Both the position numbers and the translations under genes were made by a program. From NCBI GenBank assembly GCA_004431415.1, contig QPMI01000470.1:186001-250000 (forward strand): DNA of 64,000 bases, given 5' to 3'. Source of the stretch: Cyanophora paradoxa CCMP329. Taxonomy: Eukaryota; Plantae; Glaucophyta. Position 1 is the stretch's first letter; every line of letters starts with the position of its first letter. Below, piece by piece: positions 27,434 through 43,361 of the stretch. The notes below the pieces were generated by a model. It was given only the letters and a program-made list of their open reading frames with translations. It did not search any database and was not told where the DNA came from.

Positions 27434-30400
27434 TTAGTGACGACGGGATCCGGACATGGCGAGGGCCGCCGCCGCTGCCAAAGCCGCCGCGATAGCCGAA
27501 ATCGATGTGGCGGGCTGCGAGCTCGAGCTTCCTGATCCGGAAAGCGCGGGGGCACCTACTGCACCTCCACTAGCCACGAGCACGAACTGCGCGTGCGGGT
27601 TCGGCGGCTTAGTCTTGTCCTCTCGAAAATTGGCTGTGAGCTTCTGCGCAGTTGCAAATCTTGCGCGCACTGCAGTGAGATGGGTGCAGGTGGCGGTGTA
27701 GACTGCGGCGGACGTCTGCGCGACGGCGCTGCAGCCGTCGGCCTTCCACTCGCCCGCGGCCTCGTCCAGCCAGCGGAGCTGGACGCTCTGTCCGGAGGCG
27801 AGGGAGCTGCTGGCGGGGATCTCGATCTCGAAGCGGACGCCGCCGGGGAAGTCCGTGAGCTGGCCCGCCAGCGTCGCGGCGGTCACTTCGAAGATGGAGG
27901 ACAGGAACCGGGCCCCGGGGGAAGGCCGGGGGTATCTCGAGGTCGTCGGCGACACCGTCACCGAGGCCTGGCCCGGCCCGGCCCGCACGCCGTCAAATAC
28001 TGCGACAACTAATATTCATCGTGACTTCATTTTGCTGCACCTGGAAATCGGCGCCAGCGTTCGCGCTGGCATTGAAGGTGACCTGCGCGAACAGAGAGAC
28101 TCGAATTCGAATTCAACCTGGAGCTCGAGAAGCGTCGAATCTCAAGCGTACCACAATCGCGCCGCGCGCTGCGCCGCGCGGGCGGACGCGAAGCGTGAGG
28201 GATTCCGACTGCCCAGCCTTGTTCGGGCAGACTTTGAAGCTGTACGGGGACACATCGCTGTCCGCGCGGTTCGGGTTCTGACTGCCGCAGGCCGTGCCAT
28301 TGCCGCTCAGAGTAATCTGCATCGAGCGCGTCATCATAATCTGCCATTAAATATTGCCGACGCGATCATATATATTGTCTCTAGTTGAAAAACGATTATA
28401 TTTACCTTCGCGGATACGTCGGCGAGAGCCTTCTGGGTTTCCTTGCGGACAGCGGCGGCGACGGAGGACGAAGCGGGGAGGGCGGCCACGAGCCCTGCGA
28501 GGCTCTCTTGGAGGGCCTGCGCACGATAACACAGAATAAGATCATGTAGAATAATAAACTCCGGCACATAATAATACGATGAATGCTAATGACTTTAATT
28601 TATTGAAACTACGACCCAGACCGCGAGTATAGCTAGATATAGGGCCTCGGGGGATGCCCGCGCAGCCCCTTATCCCGCAAAACTAGCGTTGGCCATCGGT
28701 TATTAATAACACGTACCGCAGCGTTGACTCCAGGCGTGGACGCAAGGTTCTGGACGCAAGTTTCTTCTGGAGAATGAACTGCAAAAACGATCAAATTAAA
28801 CGACGCACTGGATTCTCCTTGATGACCTTCAACAGGAGCTCTGTACCCCGGACCGCCGAGGCCTCCTGCAGCGATCGCGAGACATATCATGAGTAGACGG
28901 ATCGAAATCGAATGCAGAGGAAATTGAACGTTAACGCACTGAGAGGGCGCCAGTACTCGAAGCGAGGGGCGCGACCGACGAGAAGAAGTTTACGAGGGCG
29001 CCGGCGGTCTGATCACGACGAGCGAGATGGTATGGCAATCAGTGTTCGTCACAGGATCCGGAGCTGCAGCTCTACTAGGCTGGATGCAGGCGCACGGCTG
29101 GGTCTTTGAGGTTGACTCCGGCCTTCGCTGCTTCCGTCGTTACGGTCTGCGTTCACGTTGTTCAACGCTCGTACGCGTCATAAAGTTCAAGCTCGTTCAA
29201 CGCTTGTTCAGGGGTGCAAGAAATAACTGTCGCACCGACATGGCAGTAGAGAGGGCGCCGGAGAATTTGGAGAGAAGGTCGGCGCTCGACTGGTGCAGGG
29301 CGCGGCGGAGCTTGAGGCTGACTCCGGAGGCCTGGAAATAGTACGTCTTCAGCGACTCGATGTTGGCGATGATTTGGGCCATCTTCTCCACGAATGTGAG
29401 GTTGGTGTTCTGGAAGCGATCGCGACCAAGACTCGATCAGATCTAGATTTAATCTGGCTTCGATCGCGAAGCCGTAGTGCTCGCGCGCACCGCGACAACT
29501 GCGGCCATTTGCTGGTCGAAGGTGGCAAGCATTTGCTGTCAAAATTGCGGCATATCAGCAGCGGATAACACATATTGTGCAAATGAAGGCTGAACGAACG
29601 TCGAACTGAGCGACGAACGGCATGGTCGAGTCCACGACGGGATTAACCGTGATGGCGCCCGGAATGGGGAAGCTGGTCGAGAGGCCGGCTGGGTCCTTCA
29701 CCACAACAATTAGAGACGACGTCACCGCACCAGCAGAGCTCTGCGATCGCGATCACGATCGCGAGCCGCAAATCAATATTCATGCGAGTGCGCTTTCAAG
29801 ACTTTGCTTGGTTGCTACTAGAACTTTGCTTGCAATTATAATCACCGCGGCCGAGGGGAAGTATAGGCCGAAGGTAGCGTCGGGGGAGTCGCGGGCGAGC
29901 TCGCTCGTGTAGCCCGTGCCAGTGACGGTGTACCTGCCATCCCGCCATCGCATTAGCTCTCTAGATCTCTAGAAGTTAATATAAGCTTTGCGTGCACGCA
30001 CGTGAGGGGGAAGGAGCTCGCCCCCCAGCCCGTGCACGTCACCTGAAACGAGATAAGCGAAAATCGATCGCGACTGCATACATTGGAATAGCGCGCGTGC
30101 ACCGTGACCTTGTCGATGACGGCCTTGACAGTGCTGGGCGACGCGCTGCACGAGCCGCCCGCCGGCGGATTTCCGGCCAGGACGACCGGCGGCGCGGGCG
30201 TGGGGGTGGGGCCTGATCATGGGCACCATCGCGATCGGTATCGGTATCGGTAATAAATTTTTAATAGATCGCGCGCGTGCGCGTGCGAACCCGTGGGAGC
30301 CTGCGGGGGGCTCGGGGACGCTGTTGGGCTTGGGGCGGCTGCAGCGGATCCGGAAGGGCTCGGGGTAGGGCTCGGCGACGGCGACGCGGCCGGGCTCGGG

Positions 30401-32862: not shown

Positions 32863-33806
32863 GGCATTGCTATACCGGTAGGCTGCGGTAGCTATAGCTA
32901 TTAGCTAGCGCTGCTCACTAGTACTAGTATACGTACTGCGGCATGCAGAGTCATTGCAGACTGCAGTGCTGCACAGCCTGCACTGCGGCAGCTGCGGCAC
33001 TGCGGCACTACCGGTAGTACTGCCGCCGCAGTGCGCATGCCACTGGGCCACTGTACATGTACGTACATGTGGGCCAGGCTGGCCAGGTACCGCCGTACCG
33101 GGTACGTACGAATCCCGGTCGATCGGAGTTTCAATTGCATGTTCGATCGAAGTTCAACTTAAAAAAACAAATATGAGCGTATACCCCTGTTACCGGTCAG
33201 CCCGGCGCGACGGCGGCAGCTGCAGGCTGCAGCTGCAGGCAGGCGAAGACGTCGAAGTCGACATGCATGCGCATATGCCGCCGCGCGTAGTGCATGCCGC
33301 GGGCCCGCGAGAATGGCGGAGTAGTGCTCGGCCATGGGGGCAAGCGCCGGCGGGGTACACTCTCGCATATTCCTCGAGAGATTCCCGTAGATTCCTCGGT
33401 CTCCCGCCGGCGTACGCACTCGCAATTGTCACTGCTGCTCTGCAGACAGCTCTCCCGTGCCTGGCAAGCAGGCATCGCGACCTGCCAGGTTGGCAACAGC
33501 GAGAGCAACAACGGCCACGCGCACGGCTGATCGCTTGCAGCTTCCTTGCAAAGCATCCAAATAGCTCGCGCGTCAAGCTGCAGCACCACCCGGCACAGCA
33601 GGGTGCAGGCAACAGGTCCGGCCGATCGGCCGCGTATACGTAACCGCGCACGCACGCGCGGCGCCCGGCAGCCGGTCGCTCTCTCTAGATCAGGGCTCAT
33701 ACAGACAAAGCGCGGCATCTCCAGGCGCGGCCGCTCTGCGCGCAACAGCTCTCCGGCTCTATGTGGCGCGCAACGTTAACGCAGCTAACAGCCGCTCCCG
33801 CAGACG

Positions 33807-36800
33807 ATGACCCTCCCCGCGGCGTCGGCGCCGGCGAGCCTCCGCCTCGTCTGGGGTCGGGCCAACGAGTTCAAGGAAGGCGACGCCTCTGCGGGGCTCG
33901 CGGCCGCCTCGGATGCGGAGCGGGCGGCCGCGCGCGCGGCGATCGCCGCGACGCCCCTCGCGGGCGTGCGGGGGTACGACTTCGTCGACGACGCCGTCAC
34001 GAAGCTCCTTGAGTCGTCCATCGACGCGGCGGCCGCGGCGCGCGCGGAGACGGCGGGCCGGACCATCGGAGACCTTCGGTCCTTTCTCCTCTCCGCTTCT
34101 GGCGACGAGGCGCGCGCGGCCGCGGGGTTCTCTCTAAGCACTTCGTATTCAAATTCGATCCTTCGATCTCAAGAACGGTCCTGCGCAGATTCGAGCCCTG
34201 TGCCCCGGGCTGCGCTCCGAGGTCATCGCGGGGGTATGCAAGCTCATGTCCAACAACGAGCTCAGCGCCGTGAGCGCCAAGGCGTGCCCGTACCCCCCTC
34301 TCTCCCCCCTCTCCCGAGCCGCCGCCTTATACCCCGCTGCAGATATACAACCCGCAGGGCGAGGGGGGTCTCGGGGCGGAGGGGTACCTGTCCAGTCGGT
34401 GCGCCCCGCCCCCCCCCCAACTTCCTCTACCCCCGGATGAAATCTGACCTCTGGGCCGCCTGCAGAATTCAGCCGAACAGCCCCACAGACGATCCGGAAG
34501 AGGCGAGCCTCGAAAATTCGATCAAAACCTTCCTTCGTGTACCCCACCACCGATCCCGGTGACCCGGGTACCCCCGCAGGTCCTCTACAACGTGCTTGAG
34601 GGCCTCAGCTACGGCTGCGGCGACGCCCTCCTCGGCATCAACGGTACCCCAATGCACCTCGTATTCTTCGAACTCGTACCCCCCTCACTCTCCGGGTGCA
34701 GTGGTTGCCGGGGACGCGGCGAACGTTCGCCAACTCGAAAGGGTACTCCGCGACGTCGTCGAAACGTTCTCGGTACCCCCCTCGAAGCGGGAGCTGGAGG
34801 GGGTACGGATCCCGAGCGCTCCCGCCCTCCACCCCTTCCCCCCGCCTCTCGGCGACCCTACATGAGCTACCCGTCCAGGTTGAGGGCGTAGAATTCGAAG
34901 ACGAGAGCGAGCCGCGGGGGGTACCCTTCGCCCCGCTCCGGGCGGCCACTCGCTGGCGAGCTCCGATTTCCTTTGCTTCCGTACCCCCCTCCCAACCCAC
35001 ATTCCTGATACCCCCTCGCGCCCCCTAGGTGCGTCCTGGGGCACATCGACGCCCAGGTGCGATATCACTATCGTTCGCGGGTTGTACGATGCTCCAGGAG
35101 GGGGGGCTCCGACTTTCGGATCCCCGCCTAGGCCTCCTACAGGCCTCGCTATTTTTAGCCTGCCTCCCTGGGGCTCCGGATGCGGATCCCCGCCTACTGG
35201 CCCTGTTCTTGCTCGCGTCAAGGATGCGGATCCGGCTGCCCTGTTCTTGCCCGCGTCAAGGCCTGGGGTAGGCCTGGCGCCGGCCCAGCAACTATCAATA
35301 GCCCAAGTCAGCGTGCAGCGGGCGCCCCGCCCGCGCCAATGCCTCTCGGCCTCCGCCTCGCTAGCTATATATAGGCAGCTCCGCCCCGGTCTAGGCTCGG
35401 CTGCGCCCCGCCTGCGCCCGCGCTGACCGGGCCCGCCCCGCCCCGGGCTCAGGTGGAGGCGGCCGCGAAGGACCCACGCCTCCTCGACTGCGGTGCGCGG
35501 CCGGCGCCCCCGCCTAGGCCTCCTCGGATCAAATCTCGCCCAAGCTAGCTCAAGCTAGCCATCGGCCGACCGAATTGCCGCGCCTCACCTGCTCCGGCGC
35601 CCCGCCCCGGCCCGCAGCACCTTCAACAGCTTATATATAAGCCTCCTAACTAACTAACGCCTCGCCCTTCAAATCCCCCCGAGCCAATGCCTCACCGGCG
35701 CCCCGGCCCGCAGCGTTCCAGTCGATCGGGGGCACCGAATCGCTCCTCCACACCTTCGGCCTCGAGCTCGACCGCGTGCGCCCCAATTACAAGCCCTACA
35801 GCTATCTTAAGGCCTTAAGTTCTAGTTCCTCGCTATCTATTTATCTCTTACAGTCTTACTCTAGTTCCTTACTCTAGTTCCTTAGACCGCGTGCGCCCCG
35901 GGCCCTATCTTACGGCCTTATGTGAAGCTTCTATATAAAAGGTTTAACCGCCTTTAAGCCTTCCTCCCGGCCTTCCTCTCTTGACCCCCTTCCCTTCGGC
36001 CTTCCTCTCTTGACCACTTTCCTTATCTATTTCCTTACTCTCGCACTGCAGTTCCGGGGGCAGCTGCGGGGCACGGCGGGGCAGGCGCAGTACTTCGAGA
36101 CGGGGCAGGGCTCCGCCGCCACCAACGGCGCCGCCCACGTGCGCCTCACCGGTTCCCCGCCCCGCCCCGCTCGAACTATAGTCGGTTTTCGACCTATAGC
36201 TACCCTCTTAGATATCGATATGCATCTTCCGCCGCCCTCGCCCTTGCTTCCGTCCTCTTCGGCTTTCGCCCCAGCCGGCGCAACACAAATTACAACTTTA
36301 AACGTCAACGCGCTCCGCAGGGCGTGGACATGGTGACGCTGGAGGCGAGGGCGCACGGCCTCGCGCGGGCCCTCGCCCGCGGCAACCGCCACTGGACCCT
36401 CGCCAACACTGTGCGCATGCGCGCGCGCAGAGCCGGGGATGGATAGAGCGGATATATAGAGCTGGGATAGATAGATAGATAGAGCGGATAGAGCTACGAT
36501 AGATAGGGCTCGGGTCCTAAGGAGGCCGGGTCCTGAGCTCTGGAAAGGCGAGCAGCTCCGGGGGTACGCGATTAGCGATCGATCTTCTGATCGGGGGGGC
36601 AGGTGGCCGGCTTCATCGGGCCCGAGGTCTTCCGTACCCCGGCCCAGCTCCTCCGGTGCGAGTGACTACCCCCCAGCTCCACCTCCACGCCCAACTTCTC
36701 CACTTCCCCCCTTCCCCTCCCCCCTTCCCCCCCCCCCCTTCTAGTTCGTGCAGCTGCCTCCTCCTCCTCTCTATCCCAGGCTGACGACGCTGACGGGCCG

Positions 36801-39800
36801 GGCCGGGCTGGGCGGGGGTACAGGGCCTGCCTGGAGGACCTCTTCATGGGGAAGCTCCACGGCCTCACCTTCGTGCGCGTTCGCGTACCCCCCCTCTCCC
36901 TCCCCCCCTTTCCGAAGCTAAATCGGGCACGCGCGCAGGGGCTCGACGTCTGCTCGACGTACCACATGGGGGTCGACCTGCCCGAGGCGCGTACCCCCCC
37001 TCCCCTCCCCCCCCCTTTTCAGTTTTCTTACCCTCCTTTCTGCCTCCAGCTCGAGGCGATTGCGGAAGAAGTGGCTCGGGCGCGCCCCGCCTTCTTCATG
37101 GCCCTACCCGGCCCCAGGCGCGCTCCGCCCCGCCCGTAAAGAAGTTTTTGAAGCTTAAAGCGTAAGCTTAAGAAGCCGTAAATACCCCGCCCCGCCCGTT
37201 CCGTCCCGCCCCGTCCCGTCGTAGGATTTAGCCGCGGCGTTCAATGCCGGCAAGAGCCGCCTCCTCCCGCCCCTCTTCCGCGCCCCTTCCCAGTACAAGA
37301 TGGATCGCGCACTAGTACTAGCACTCCCGCCTCGCTTCCCTTCCCCGGCGGCCCCTAACTGGGCCGGGGCCGGCGGGCAGCGACCCGATGCTGAGCTACC
37401 TGTCGACGTCGGCGCGGCACGTGGCGCGCCTCCGCGCCGCCCGGCCCCACGAGCGCCGCGTGCGTAGATATAGCCCCCAACTCTCCGGGGATCCCTACCC
37501 CTCTCTTAGAAACGCCTGCGCCCCTGGCCTAAGCAAGCTTGAGTTACACCAATGTGACCGGTGCCCTCTCTGAACTCAGATGACTCGCCCGATGGCGGCG
37601 TTCCTTCGGGGGCTGGGCATCTGCGCCGCGGACGGATCCCTCATCCCCGGCCGCGCCGGCGACACCCCCCGCATGTCCGCCTGCCTTCCCCCCGGACCCC
37701 TGAAGCTCCTACCAGGCTAAGATAATTTAAGATGCAGCTTACAAGTAAGCTAAGATATTATCTAGATGTGAACCCACTCGAAAGCTTACGTACACGGCGC
37801 GCATAGTCCTTTGATCTCTCTGACCCACGGCCTTAAGCTTACCACCATCATATCTCATCTCATCATGCTGACCCCGAGAGCCCATCACGCGTACGGCAGG
37901 TACGCGCTCTACCGGCGGCGCAAGGGGGACGCGCGCCCCTGGGGCGATCTCCTCTCGGAGGCCCGCGCCGCCCTCGCCAGGCTCCAGGTCAGACCCGATC
38001 CGATCCGATTCGATCCGAGGCGTAACGCCGACCAGCATTAGCCAAGCTTAAGCTATACATAGTTCGAAGATGAGAGCGCGCCGCGTAGAGCTCGGAGGCG
38101 CGAGCCTCGCCCCCCGCTGACTCGATCGCCCTGCACGCAGGCGCGAGGCCTCGACGTCGGGTTCGAATCCCCGCCTCGCTTATTTGTGGATCGAAACGCC
38201 CGGCCCCCGGCCTCTATAGCTAGATCTTGGCCCCGAGCGATCCTCGCCCGAGCGATCCGTGATAGAACCCCCTAAATTCTCTCCCTTTAAACTTCGCCGC
38301 CCCTCGCTCTTCTCCCGGAGTCCTCTCACTCACTCACCCCCGCCCCCAAGGTACGGGCACGACGGGGCGTTTGGGGACCCGCCGGCCGTCCGCGCCCGCC
38401 TCGAGCGCGTCTACGCCCAGGCCAAGGTCCGATCTGATCTGATCTGAGCTGATCTGAGCTGATCTGACCCGATCTAATTTGATCCGATTCGATCTGGTAT
38501 AGAGCGCATGATTTGCGACACATTTATATAATTAATCATCTAAGCGATAACTCGACTCTGATCTGATATAATCGGATCTGATCTGACAGCGGGTGCTGCG
38601 GGAGGGGATGGACGTGCCCCGCCTCCTCCGCTCCGCCCCCTCCCTCCGCGACGGTGCGGCCGTGCCCCGGCCCCGGCCGGGGTACAGGAGGCGCCTCGCG
38701 ATCGCCTCCTGACTGAGCCGCCCCGGCAGCGCTGGTCGTCCACACGGCTTCCCGGGACCGCGAGGAGTGCGCTCCTTTCTATGGTCTTCTGTAGCATTTA
38801 CTAGCTGTTCTTCCATTTCTTGCATAGATAAAAAAGCCTTATCTCTGGTGGTCAGCTGTATTGAGGCGGCCCCCTCATACGAGTGCGCGCAGGTACCTCC
38901 TGCGGCCGGCGAGCGGCGAGGCGCTGGCGCCCTCCGCGCCGGCAGCCCTGGCGCCCCTCCGCGCCGCCCTGCGCGCCGCCGCCGCCGCCGCCGGCTCGGG
39001 CGCGGGCGGCGGCGCCCTCCTCCAGATCGTCGTCTCGGACGGTGCGGTACCCCGGTCTTATACATCCGATCTGATCTGATCCGATGTATCTGATCTGATC
39101 TGATGTATCTGATCCGAGCAGGCCTGAACCGCGAGGCGGTGGAGCGCCCGGGGGCCCTGGAGCCCTTCCTGGCGGCCCTCGCCCGCGCCGCCACCGAGGG
39201 GGGCGCGGGGGGCGCCCGCCCGGGCCCCGCCCCGCGGGCCGTGATCCTTCCCAACGGCCGCGTCCGCGCGGGGTGCGTGCGCATGCGCGCGCAGCATCAG
39301 TAAACAACGTTAACTAAACTAAACTAAAGACAACTAATTGTGTAATTGAGCGGGACTGCTATGCTGACGCTCTCTAACAGGTACGCGGTGGGGCGGGAGC
39401 TCTTCGGCGGGCTGGCGGACCTCGGGTCCGGCGCCGTACCTGGAGCTCAGATCAGATCAGATCTGATCTTTAGGGAGGCCGGCGCCGGCGCCGGCGCCGG
39501 CGCTGAGTGTATGTGCGCCCTGGTGCACGTCGTCGGCGAGCGCCCGGGCAACGGCCACCACACCTACTCCGCGTGCGCTCCTCCTCCCTCCCCTCCGCTC
39601 CCTCTCCCACTAACCTATCCGTGACAAAAAGATAAACTAAACTATCCGCTCCCCCGCTCCCTCTCCCACTAAACTATCCGTGACAAAAAGATAAACTAAA
39701 CTATCCGCTCCCCCGCTCCCTCTCCCACTAAACTATCCGTGACAAAAAGATAAACTAAACTATCCGCTCCCCCGCTCCCTCTCCCACTAAACTATCCGCT

Positions 39801-40375
39801 CCCTCTCCCACTAAACTATCCCTCTAAACTCTCCCACTAACCTATCCCTCACCCTTCCAAAAGATACGTGACGGCGGCGGGGGCGGGTCGGTGGGCGCGG
39901 GCGCCCCTGGACCACTGCGACGCCTTCGTCGTCAGGTGCGCGAGCACGCGCGCTACATACGTTACTAATTATGCATCTAGCATCTGCTTATAGATCCTAT
40001 CGATCCTGCAGCGGCGTCTCGGAGGAGGCGATAATTTTATAAGATATAGATATAAGATATATATAATTCTAGCATCTGACTGTAATTCCTATATATCGCA
40101 CGCTACATACATAAGAGATCCTATATAGCATTGCTTAGAATTGCTTATAATTATGTAATTCCTATCGATCGTGCAGCGGGATCTCGGAGGAGGCGACGCG
40201 GCCCGAGGCGGCAGCGCGGGAGGTCTGGTCCCTCCTCGCCCCGCGCCTCGCGGGGCCGGCGGGGGAGGGGGCGGAGGGGGCGGAGGGCAAGCTCGAGGAG
40301 GCGGCGGAGGGGGAGGGGGAGGATCCGGAGGAGGGCCCCGACTCCAAGCGGCAGCGGCGGGGGCCGGGGGCGTGA
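33807..40375 (+). CDS. eutBC: Fused ethanolamine ammonia-lyase large + small subunit (EutB-EutC), intron-containing
   Basis: EutB exons: RANEFKEGD..ERAAAR, TIGDLRSFLL, GLRSEVIAGVCKLMSN, GAEGYLSSR/IQPNSPTDD, EGLSYGCGDALLGIN, WCVLGHIDAQ, FQSIGGTE, YFETGQGS, GVDMVTLEARAHGLAR, VAGFIGPE, CLEDLFMGKLHGL, GLDVCSTYH, DPMLSYLSTS. EutC exons: LQIVVSDG/LN, NGRVRAG/YAVG, VVGERPGNGHHTYSA/Y, DHCDAFVV/SGISEEATRPEAAA. Stop TGA at 40373-40375. Confidence 0.92.
39600..39845. repeat. Intronic minisatellite, 59-bp unit, about 3 copies plus partial units
   Basis: Unit CTATCCGTGACAAAAAGATAAACTAAACTATCCGCTCCCCCGCTCCCTCTCCCACTAAA repeated at about 39615, 39674 and 39733. Confidence 0.9.
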
Positions 40376-41317: not shown

Positions 41318-43361
41318 TCAGGCGTAGCGGTGGATGAGGTGGAGGCCGCTCTCCGTCTCGACGACCTCGGAGACCTCGCCCACCGGCAGCGCGAACCTGG
41401 CGAAGGAAAGAGGAGGGGGAGCCGGGTGAGCCTCGCGAGCCAGGGCCGGGGCCAGGGCCGGGGCCGGGGCGTCCTCGGCTGTCTAGTGAGGAAAGGAGTG
41501 GAGGCTAGTCTAGTGAGCCTCCCGGGCCTCCGAGCCTCGGGAGACCCGCGGGCCTCGCGGGCCGAGGCAGGGTCTCCGCTATCTCCGCTCTCTGGCGGGG
41601 CGGGGCGGGGCGGGGCGGGCGCACGCGGCGTTCTCGAAGGAGCGCTGCATCTGGCCCCGCCCGAAGAAGCCGAGGTCTGGCGCGAAGCGCAGCCTCAGCC
41701 AGCGCGCGCGGCCTCAGCCTCACGCGCGCGCGCAAAGCTAAGACATACTAATAGATCGAGGGCTAAGTTCTGAGAGCTAAGTTCGCGGCCTCGCCGCAGA
41801 AAGCGTGGAGCGTGGAGCGTGGAGCGTGGAAAGCGAGCGCGCACCGCCGCCCTTCTTGGCCGAGGAGCAGTCCGACTCGGCGCGGGCCACCTCCTCGAAC
41901 CGGGCCGCCCCGGACACGATCCGCGCCCGCAGCGCTGCGCGGGCGAACGGGCGAGCGTTAGCTTGGGCGCCGGCGAGCGTCGACGCCCTCTTCTCCTCTC
42001 TTCCTTCGTCTGTCGCTGCGCACCGGCGATGATGGCGAGGGCCTCCTCCTTGGAGCGCGTGATTGTCTCCTGCTTCCAGCTGGAGGGCCGCCGCGACTGC
42101 GCGTGCTTGACGAGGACGTGCGCGCAGTGGACCTGGTTGCTTGTGCACGCCTCCCCCGCTTCACCAGGACGTGGCGCGGCCTTGGCGCGCTTGGCCTCCG
42201 CCTCCGAGTCGCTCCGCGCCCGCTGCTCCTTCTTCTCCTTGTCCGCGCGCCTGCGCTCCTCGTCCTCCTTGCGCTTGCGGGCCGCCGTGGACGGCGACGC
42301 CATCAGCTCCGAGCGCGAGTGGTACGGCGGCGTCGGCGGCCGCGCCGTGACCGTGCCGTTGGCGCTCTCGTCCATCCGCTTGTCGCGGTCGTGCGAGGGC
42401 GAGCGCCGGTGCACGACGGGCGACGAGCGCGGCGAGGGCGACGCCGTCGCTGGCGACCCGGCGTCCGACGCCAGCGGCGGCGGCGTGTCGACGGCCCCTG
42501 CGTCCAGGCCGGTCACGGAGGCGGGCGGGCGGGCGGGCGGGCGGGTGTGGCACGCCTCTCAGAATGTATGTCCGCGTGCTTCCGCCAAAGGTAACGGCCG
42601 CGCCATCGGAGAGCCTGAACGGAAGCTTCGGCTGGATGCGCTTCCCGTCTACGAAAGTCCCGTGCGCTGCGCCACGACGACTCCGGTCAGACGCGTGCGT
42701 GCGCGAGGCGGGTCGGGCGGGGGCCGGGCTGGCGCGCCTGAGTGCAGGTCTCTGCGGGCGGCAGGAAGATAGCATGTGCAACGCGGGTGAGTGGGCAGAG
42801 AATACGGGGCGGCCGGGCCGGGCAGGCGGGGAGAGGGGCCGGCCGCACATGATGTATACGTCGCCTGTGCGACCGTCAGCGCGGCGCGCTCGCGGCGGCG
42901 CGACGCGCAGTGCACGCACCCTGCGGATCGAAGGCGATCGCCGCGTGCTGCCGCGAGATGCTCTGGTGGTCGAGGACGAAGTTTGAAGATCTGCGGCCTC
43001 CAGTTAGCTCTCTGCACCTTCCCAGGCCGCCGATCGCGGTCGCAAGCGGATCTATTAAGCATATTCCGCCCACGGCAAGCGCCTCGCGCCGTGGACGCGG
43101 CCCCCGACGCACGCTTGCCGCCCAAGGAGGGCGTACTTCAAGCTGAGCGGGAGTTCTTCAATCTTCTTGTCGGCCTTGAAGCATTCCAACCGGGTGCCGC
43201 TGGTCTTTGGCACGGTGCACCTGCGACGTCTCGGTCGGCACGAGCGGTTTGAGCGACGGGGAAGTGAAGGGGGAGGCTGACCAGTCGGGGATCGCGTCAA
43301 CCTGCGAGGGAGATTGTCCTGGAGACACTGAGGGGCCTGGACTCCTTCCAGGTGGCTCCAT
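41318..43361 (-). CDS. FHA domain + Pin1-type parvulin peptidyl-prolyl isomerase
   Basis: FHA part: [49 protein letters not shown]. Parvulin part: [82 protein letters not shown] then stop. Confidence 0.9.

Follow-up and report, generated by a model that had tools for sequence, protein, structure and literature searches.

A single-chain EutB-EutC gene with host-type introns in the glaucophyte Cyanophora paradoxa, likely encoding an adenosylcobalamin-dependent ethanolamine ammonia-lyase

Introduction

The closest described systems are the ethanolamine ammonia-lyases (EAL; EC 4.3.1.7) of Escherichia coli and Salmonella, formed by an alpha subunit, EutB (PF06751), and a beta subunit, EutC (PF05985), and represented by structures 3abo and 7xrm. 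The chemistry of EAL, comprising homolysis, radical migration and formation of acetaldehyde and ammonia, has been documented (PMC4413051; PMC8473560; PMC5821096), and the role of Glu287 has been described (PMC4413051; PMC8473560). The substrate-binding and catalytic residues of the E. coli enzyme are Arg160, Gln162, Asn193, Glu287 and Asp362. Cobalamin is contacted by alpha residues 194, 246, 295 and 401 and by beta residues 206, 207, 228, 241 and 258; Pro194 contacts the corrin via its backbone. The EAL of Acinetobacter baumannii is active in the absence of EutA and a shell (PMC9426561).

Surveys of B12 use in eukaryotes list methionine synthase (MetH), methylmalonyl-CoA mutase (MCM) and class II ribonucleotide reductase (RNR II) alone (PMC2667541; PMC8085122; PMC11439496). 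Glaucophytes are obligate B12 requirers, some with MCM (PMC11439496), and all three known B12 pathways are complete in Blastocladiomycota (PMC8085122). No report or test of a eukaryotic EAL was found in the literature searched, which left out most subscription journals. A 64-kb stretch of the C. paradoxa genome, hereafter the window, was analysed, and a fused EutB-EutC gene found in it is described here.

Gene structure and transcription

The fused EutB-linker-EutC gene lies at 33807-40375 on the forward strand, as do all features below unless stated. It starts at 33807 and stops at 40373-40375; in the spliced-frame check it gave 825 codons (825 amino acids) with a single terminal stop and none internal. 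Its 28 exons, placed by coordinate from splice signals, are 33807-34109, 34189-34281, 34343-34398, 34466-34502, 34580-34643, 34702-34802 and 34879-34955 (exons 1-7); 35029-35056, 35453-35492, 35714-35775, 36052-36138, 36321-36410, 36603-36655 and 36824-36872 (exons 8-14); 36939-36986, 37050-37117, 37381-37459, 37580-37674, 37900-37987, 38141-38160 and 38351-38426 (exons 15-21); and 38590-38653, 38730-38766, 38893-39041, 39122-39272, 39381-39572, 39864-39935 and 40177-40375 (exons 22-28). The 27 introns are 58-396 nt long, 21 with GT-AG and six with GC-AG ends. The GC content is 0.75 in exons (GC3 0.92) and 0.58 in introns.

The original prediction, made from sequence alone, had the right start and stop but gave about 25 exons. 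Its central claim of EutB and EutC in one gene, splicing in frame, was borne out by the frame check and the RNA contigs. Frameshifts in the linker exons (about 37400-38950), which it had named as a refutation, were not found, and a frameshifted pseudogene was rejected. The frame is open across all 28 exons. The gene encodes EutB, linker and EutC as a single chain in one reading frame.

The EutB region, a TIM barrel, occupies exons 1-18 (33807-37674) and was assigned by exon-wise Pfam matches and an E. coli EutB residue map. It carries an acidic, proline-containing loop insertion of about 30 residues at 34774-34955 (end of exon 6 plus exon 7), which is Cyanophora-specific in the alignment and without profile match, and which is present in RNA contigs X2 and X3 and in the public protein model P0001. 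The helical alpha-to-beta linker (37900-38426, exons 19-21) is conserved in the fused family; it shares 18/29 and 18/25 identities with the Blastocladiella emersonii protein and is helical in the AlphaFold model of the latter. The EutC region, the cobalamin-binding beta subunit, spans 38590-40250 (exons 22-28) and was assigned from exon-wise profile scores and a residue map. The translation ends in an acidic tail (40251-40375), with a short basic patch resembling a nuclear localization signal (NLS) at its end, which is unconserved among homologue termini.

Exon-only contigs were found in three runs that are probably RNA; the introns are present in a DNA-like run. A contig of 1336 nt carries exons 6-18 at the model's predicted length of exactly 877 nt, with base-for-base agreement, and its further 303 nt beyond exon 18 agree in length with exons 19-23 followed by 18 nt of exon 24. 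In further contigs exons 24 and 25 are joined and exons 21, 24 and 27 are covered, and the first exon junction is identical in the EukProt model. Two joints were directly listed as GT..AG, and the remaining ones were derived from contig offsets and depth bins. The comparison excluded exon 1, intron 1, the last 150 nt and the upstream stretch 33780-33803, and the RNA nature of the runs was guessed, though the contigs lack introns. With the runs taken as probable RNA, an intact spliced gene is transcribed in C. paradoxa.

Some details of the splicing pattern remain ambiguous. A 48-nt in-frame stretch with GT..AG ends (39426-39473) inside exon 26 may be a short intron or an exonised loop, the frame being intact both ways; depth arithmetic for run X2, with 75 nt in bin 39425-39624, is in favour of read-through without proving it. 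RNA contig X1 retains the last intron (27). At 40006-40035 within this intron lies a near-duplicate of the exon 28 acceptor, use of which would lead to an early stop. A branch-point-like motif with an AG directly before the ATG (33780-33803) may possibly be the acceptor of an upstream untranslated or coding exon; a convincing in-frame 5' extension was sought upstream of the ATG and none was identified. Intron 26 contains a 59-bp tandem repeat (39595-39850; 3.5 copies, 99% match), and 5-bp repeats occur in introns 21 and 24 and within exon 26.

Public annotation and genomic context

Exon 1 matches the EukProt C. paradoxa model tig00020801_g13923.t1 (P0001) at 100%. This model has 398 amino acids, omits exons 9-10 and ends after exon 16; being truncated, it hides the EutB-EutC fusion in public annotation. 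Downstream on the reverse strand (41600-42516) lies an intron-bearing gene for a Pin1-like parvulin (prolyl isomerase; E 5e-13 to human Pin1) with a like intron and donor style.

A tblastn search of the 64-kb window with 17 E. coli Eut proteins and Eat returned eutB plus one weak eutA match, and eutA, eutT, permease and shell genes were not found. The original prediction that the window lacks eutA, adenosyltransferase (eutT) and microcompartment genes was upheld by this search. The weak E. coli EutA match (25163-24969, reverse strand; E 0.03, 34% over 58 amino acids) was treated as chance. The marks of a long eut (microcompartment) system, namely nearby eutA, eutT and shell genes and an encapsulation peptide on EutC, are not met in the window. 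Pfam searches of 20 other open reading frames in the window gave nothing beyond a weak GPS (GPCR proteolysis site) motif at 27437-27988 on the reverse strand (E 0.005).

Domain identity and active-site residues

Searches were run exon by exon and not with the joined spliced protein. Six single exons matched Pfam EutB at E 0.025 or better (best 9e-14), the match beginning at residue 11, whereas no single exon reached Pfam EutC, because the EutC exons are too short and divergent. With a profile of 97 fused homologues, 22 of the 28 exons, including EutC exons 24-28, beat all 200 shuffles in strictly collinear order. All columns invariant among these homologues were kept (78/78), three of them in intron-split codons. 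The B. emersonii orthologue carries Pfam EutC, and its AlphaFold model (pLDDT 90) superposes on E. coli EAL with TM scores of 0.88 for alpha (3abo_A) and 0.74 for beta (7xrm_B). The homologues score 83-88 bits against NCBIfam EutC, below its cut-off of 230 bits.

The key alpha codons are Arg160 (split, 34397-34398/34466), Gln162 (34470), Asn193 (34640), Glu287 (36097), Asp362 (36945), Met392 (37098) and Tyr404 (37397), and the key beta codons are Arg206/Val207 (39259-39264), Glu228 (39538) and Tyr241 (start of exon 27). Identical to E. coli are alpha Arg160, Gln162, Asn193, Leu225, Phe245, Gln246, Ser247, Glu287, Phe329, Asp362, Met392, Met401, Leu402 and Tyr404, and beta Arg206, Val207, Gly227-Pro230, Ser239 and Tyr241. 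Retention of Arg160/Gln162, Asn193, Glu287 and Asp362 had been predicted correctly, but Asp362 had been misplaced: the motif named for it corresponds to E. coli 346-353, and the residue lies in the motif that follows, at the beginning of exon 15.

Among the cobalamin contacts, positions 246, 401, 206, 207, 228 and 241 are identical, and three differ: Pro194 is replaced by Val (Ile in most of the fungal clade), Ser295 by Thr and beta Cys258 by Val. These departures are also present in relatives. Changes at alpha 365, 393 and 403, near the pocket, are family-wide, and those at alpha 409-412 were found in Cyanophora only.

Relatives and origin

Scanning genomes with exon 1 returned 74 loci from prokaryotes (L001-L074), 64 of which have full-length fused EutBC open reading frames. 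The bacterial relatives being already fused, the fusion predates the eukaryotic copies, and a fusion made in eukaryotes was rejected. Protein searches found fused orthologues in Blastocladiella, Catenaria, Allomyces, Sorochytrium, Paraphysoderma and Gonapodya, plus further contigs, several of which are eukaryotic by introns or by neighbours (cullin; pogo transposase with FEN1; TPD). One Paraphysoderma assembly (L091, L092) lists an identical EAL protein with four accessions, spread over three contigs.

A full-length tree of 50 rows (LG+G4) placed Cyanophora in a 16-row clade with fungi and other eukaryotes (support 97/94), which includes one member of unclear origin (P0278). The sister of this clade (97/94) joins a second eukaryote group and five sequences; the contigs of two of these five were examined and look bacterial, with dense genes, ribosome-binding-like sites, kinases and 70% GC. 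All 25 rows nest within bacterial fused enzymes (99/97). The Cyanophora branch is long (0.67), and its row is the truncated P0001, which covers 49% of the columns in the full-length tree. A quicker EutB-only tree under a mixture model broadly agrees. Origin from the bacterial fused-EutBC family is therefore likely, and the predicted descent from a bacterium with fused eutBC held on this nesting. A single old transfer into Cyanophora, as first proposed, was not shown, as zoosporic fungi and other eukaryotes share the clade.

The distribution of the eukaryotic copies is very patchy. Forcing all of them into one clade was not rejected (p-AU 0.065). About 16 intron positions are known in the other eukaryotes, none matching the 27 of Cyanophora (the closest miss by 1 nt and by one codon), and one intron is common to Blastocladiella and Paraphysoderma. 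The lack of any position in common with Cyanophora leans weakly to separate intron gain after lateral spread. The single 97/94 clade, the p-AU value and the common replacement of Pro194 by Ile or Val speak for ancient inheritance within eukaryotes; the patchiness, the unmatched introns and the bacterial-looking group beside the second eukaryote group speak against this alternative, which is held unlikely. Taken jointly with the whole enzyme reading, descent of the eukaryotic copies from one ancestor, with introns gained separately in each lineage, is considered likely. The spread is best accounted for by transfer between eukaryotes or by repeated acquisition from a single bacterial lineage that is poorly sampled; donor and order are not established.

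The bacterial-looking contigs (L077, L080, P0163-P0167; 70% GC) carry fused EutBC that groups with eukaryotic copies and starts with a signal-peptide-like stretch. They may stem from a lineage that served as donor or from a transfer back out of eukaryotes, both being no more than possible, and a neighbour-gene search did not reveal the identity of the group. No closer members came from a metagenome scan (best 47%); one locus labelled as human-gut metagenome (L152) was left out of the later locus reading. A viral scan returned just distant split-type eutB (33-34%), and thus no sign of a viral vector. A cyanobacterial endosymbiotic origin was rejected, as no cyanobacterium was among the named matches and EutB starts at residue 11.

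In 51 of the 64 full-length bacterial fused EutBC proteins the EutB start is preceded by more than 55 residues, and 37 of the 64 show a twin-arginine pattern, a few of them spuriously; Bacteroidota often have RK variants. Conserved eut neighbours are lacking. Tat export of the main bacterial fused clade is possible, and no paper on a periplasmic EAL was found in the literature searched.

Proposed function

The gene product is likely a functional single-chain AdoCbl-dependent EAL; its activity, compartment and AdoCbl supply are inferred. The B12 requirement of glaucophytes and the complete B12 pathways of Blastocladiomycota suit such hosts. Telling against this reading are the departures from E. 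coli at alpha 194, 295 and 409-412 and at beta 258, the homologue scores below the NCBIfam EutC cut-off, the long Cyanophora branch, the last intron retained in one RNA contig, and an adenosyltransferase not located in this genome. By established EAL chemistry, AdoCbl would be bound between the alpha barrel and the beta domain, and ethanolamine would be held by Arg160, Gln162, Asn193, Glu287 and Asp362. Homolysis of the Co-C bond, aided by Glu287, would generate the adenosyl radical, and hydrogen abstraction and amino-group migration would then yield acetaldehyde and ammonia. The enzyme is inferred to act in the cytosol, without a microcompartment or EutA, the location being inferred because the protein has no N-terminal extension, no clear transit or signal peptide and no Tat signal. 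Nitrogen, and perhaps C2 carbon, may be recovered from ethanolamine that is set free as phosphatidylethanolamine turns over or that the cell imports, and the B12 required would be that which the alga must already import. The B12-dependent nitrogen scavenging of the original prediction stays an inference, as there are no activity or growth data. To our knowledge, no member of the fused clade has been assayed.

Alternative explanations

An unlikely alternative is that the protein has the EAL fold and is an AdoCbl radical eliminase, but acts on another vicinal amino alcohol (e.g. 2-aminopropanol or an N-substituted ethanolamine) or serves to control the ethanolamine pool instead of gaining nitrogen. 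In its favour, the fused family is uncharacterised in the literature searched, no conserved eut genes flank its bacterial members, many of which have Tat-like export signals, and the changes at alpha 365, 393 and 403 are family-wide. Against another substrate, pocket positions 160, 162, 193, 225, 287, 329, 362, 392, 402 and 404 are identical to E. coli.

It is less probable still that the protein is kept for binding B12 or for regulation, possibly in the nucleus, or is an enzyme decaying without cofactor supply. The acidic tail with its NLS-like patch, the loop insertions, the long branch, the last intron retained in one contig and the absence of a detected reactivase in the window would fit such a role. 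All 78 invariant residues are kept, however, those binding substrate included, and the tail is unconserved in orthologues.

Bacterial contamination or an assembly artefact, suggested only by the bacterial nature of the nearest named families, is excluded by host-type features, namely 27 spliceosomal introns with the donor style of the adjoining Pin1-like gene and a codon bias (GC3 0.92) set against an intron GC of 0.58, and by probable RNA runs that skip the introns covered by the DNA run; the predicted argument from introns held on these spliced contigs.

Significance

The enzyme and the fusion are already known kinds, and some fungal copies are auto-named in databases. A bolder reading, with activity inferred, is favoured by a modest margin: EAL would be a fourth class of B12 enzyme, a radical eliminase, active in at least two eukaryotic supergroups (glaucophyte algae and zoosporic fungi, plus other protists), providing a microcompartment-free and perhaps reactivase-free route to ethanolamine nitrogen. 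If true, this would imply a cytosolic AdoCbl pool. An active enzyme would give algae and early fungi an extra, nitrogen-acquiring reason for their B12 demand and link bacterial B12 supply to the use of organic nitrogen. It would also raise the questions of how AdoCbl reaches an enzyme without evident mitochondrial targeting and how a suicide-prone enzyme is reactivated. Cyanophora and Blastocladiella or Allomyces are culturable. The original prediction had held that novelty would drop if eukaryotic orthologues were characterised; orthologues exist, some auto-named, and no paper on them was found.

Comparison with known systems

The Cyanophora gene shares with EutB and EutC of E. coli and Salmonella the same two domains, the same fold (shown on the fungal orthologue), the same substrate-binding residues and most cobalamin-contact positions. 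In contrast to those enzymes, it encodes one polypeptide at about 34% identity, resides in a eukaryotic host, contains 27 introns and has Pro194 replaced, and no operon, EutA, EutT or microcompartment accompanies it in the window. The inferred algal enzyme would have to resemble the EAL of A. baumannii in working free of shell and EutA, but the latter is split, two-gene and bacterial.

The fused EutBC proteins of Acidobacteriota, Planctomycetota, Bacteroidota, Myxococcota and others (about 690-800 amino acids) have the same fusion, linker and family motifs. Many of them bear a twin-arginine export signal, which the eukaryotic copies lack, and no experimental characterisation of them was found in the literature searched. 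The fungal orthologues (Allomyces KNE66001.1, Blastocladiella KAI9183326.1, Catenaria, Sorochytrium, Paraphysoderma and Gonapodya) are fused, intron-bearing nuclear genes of the same clade, with identities reaching 61% across the aligned columns of EutB. They differ in having 2-7 introns placed elsewhere; they bear automatic database names only and are absent from the fungal B12 survey (PMC8085122). MetH, MCM and RNR II are likewise B12-dependent, and MCM and RNR II also use AdoCbl radicals, but they catalyse other reactions, and none of the three works on an amino alcohol as a radical eliminase.
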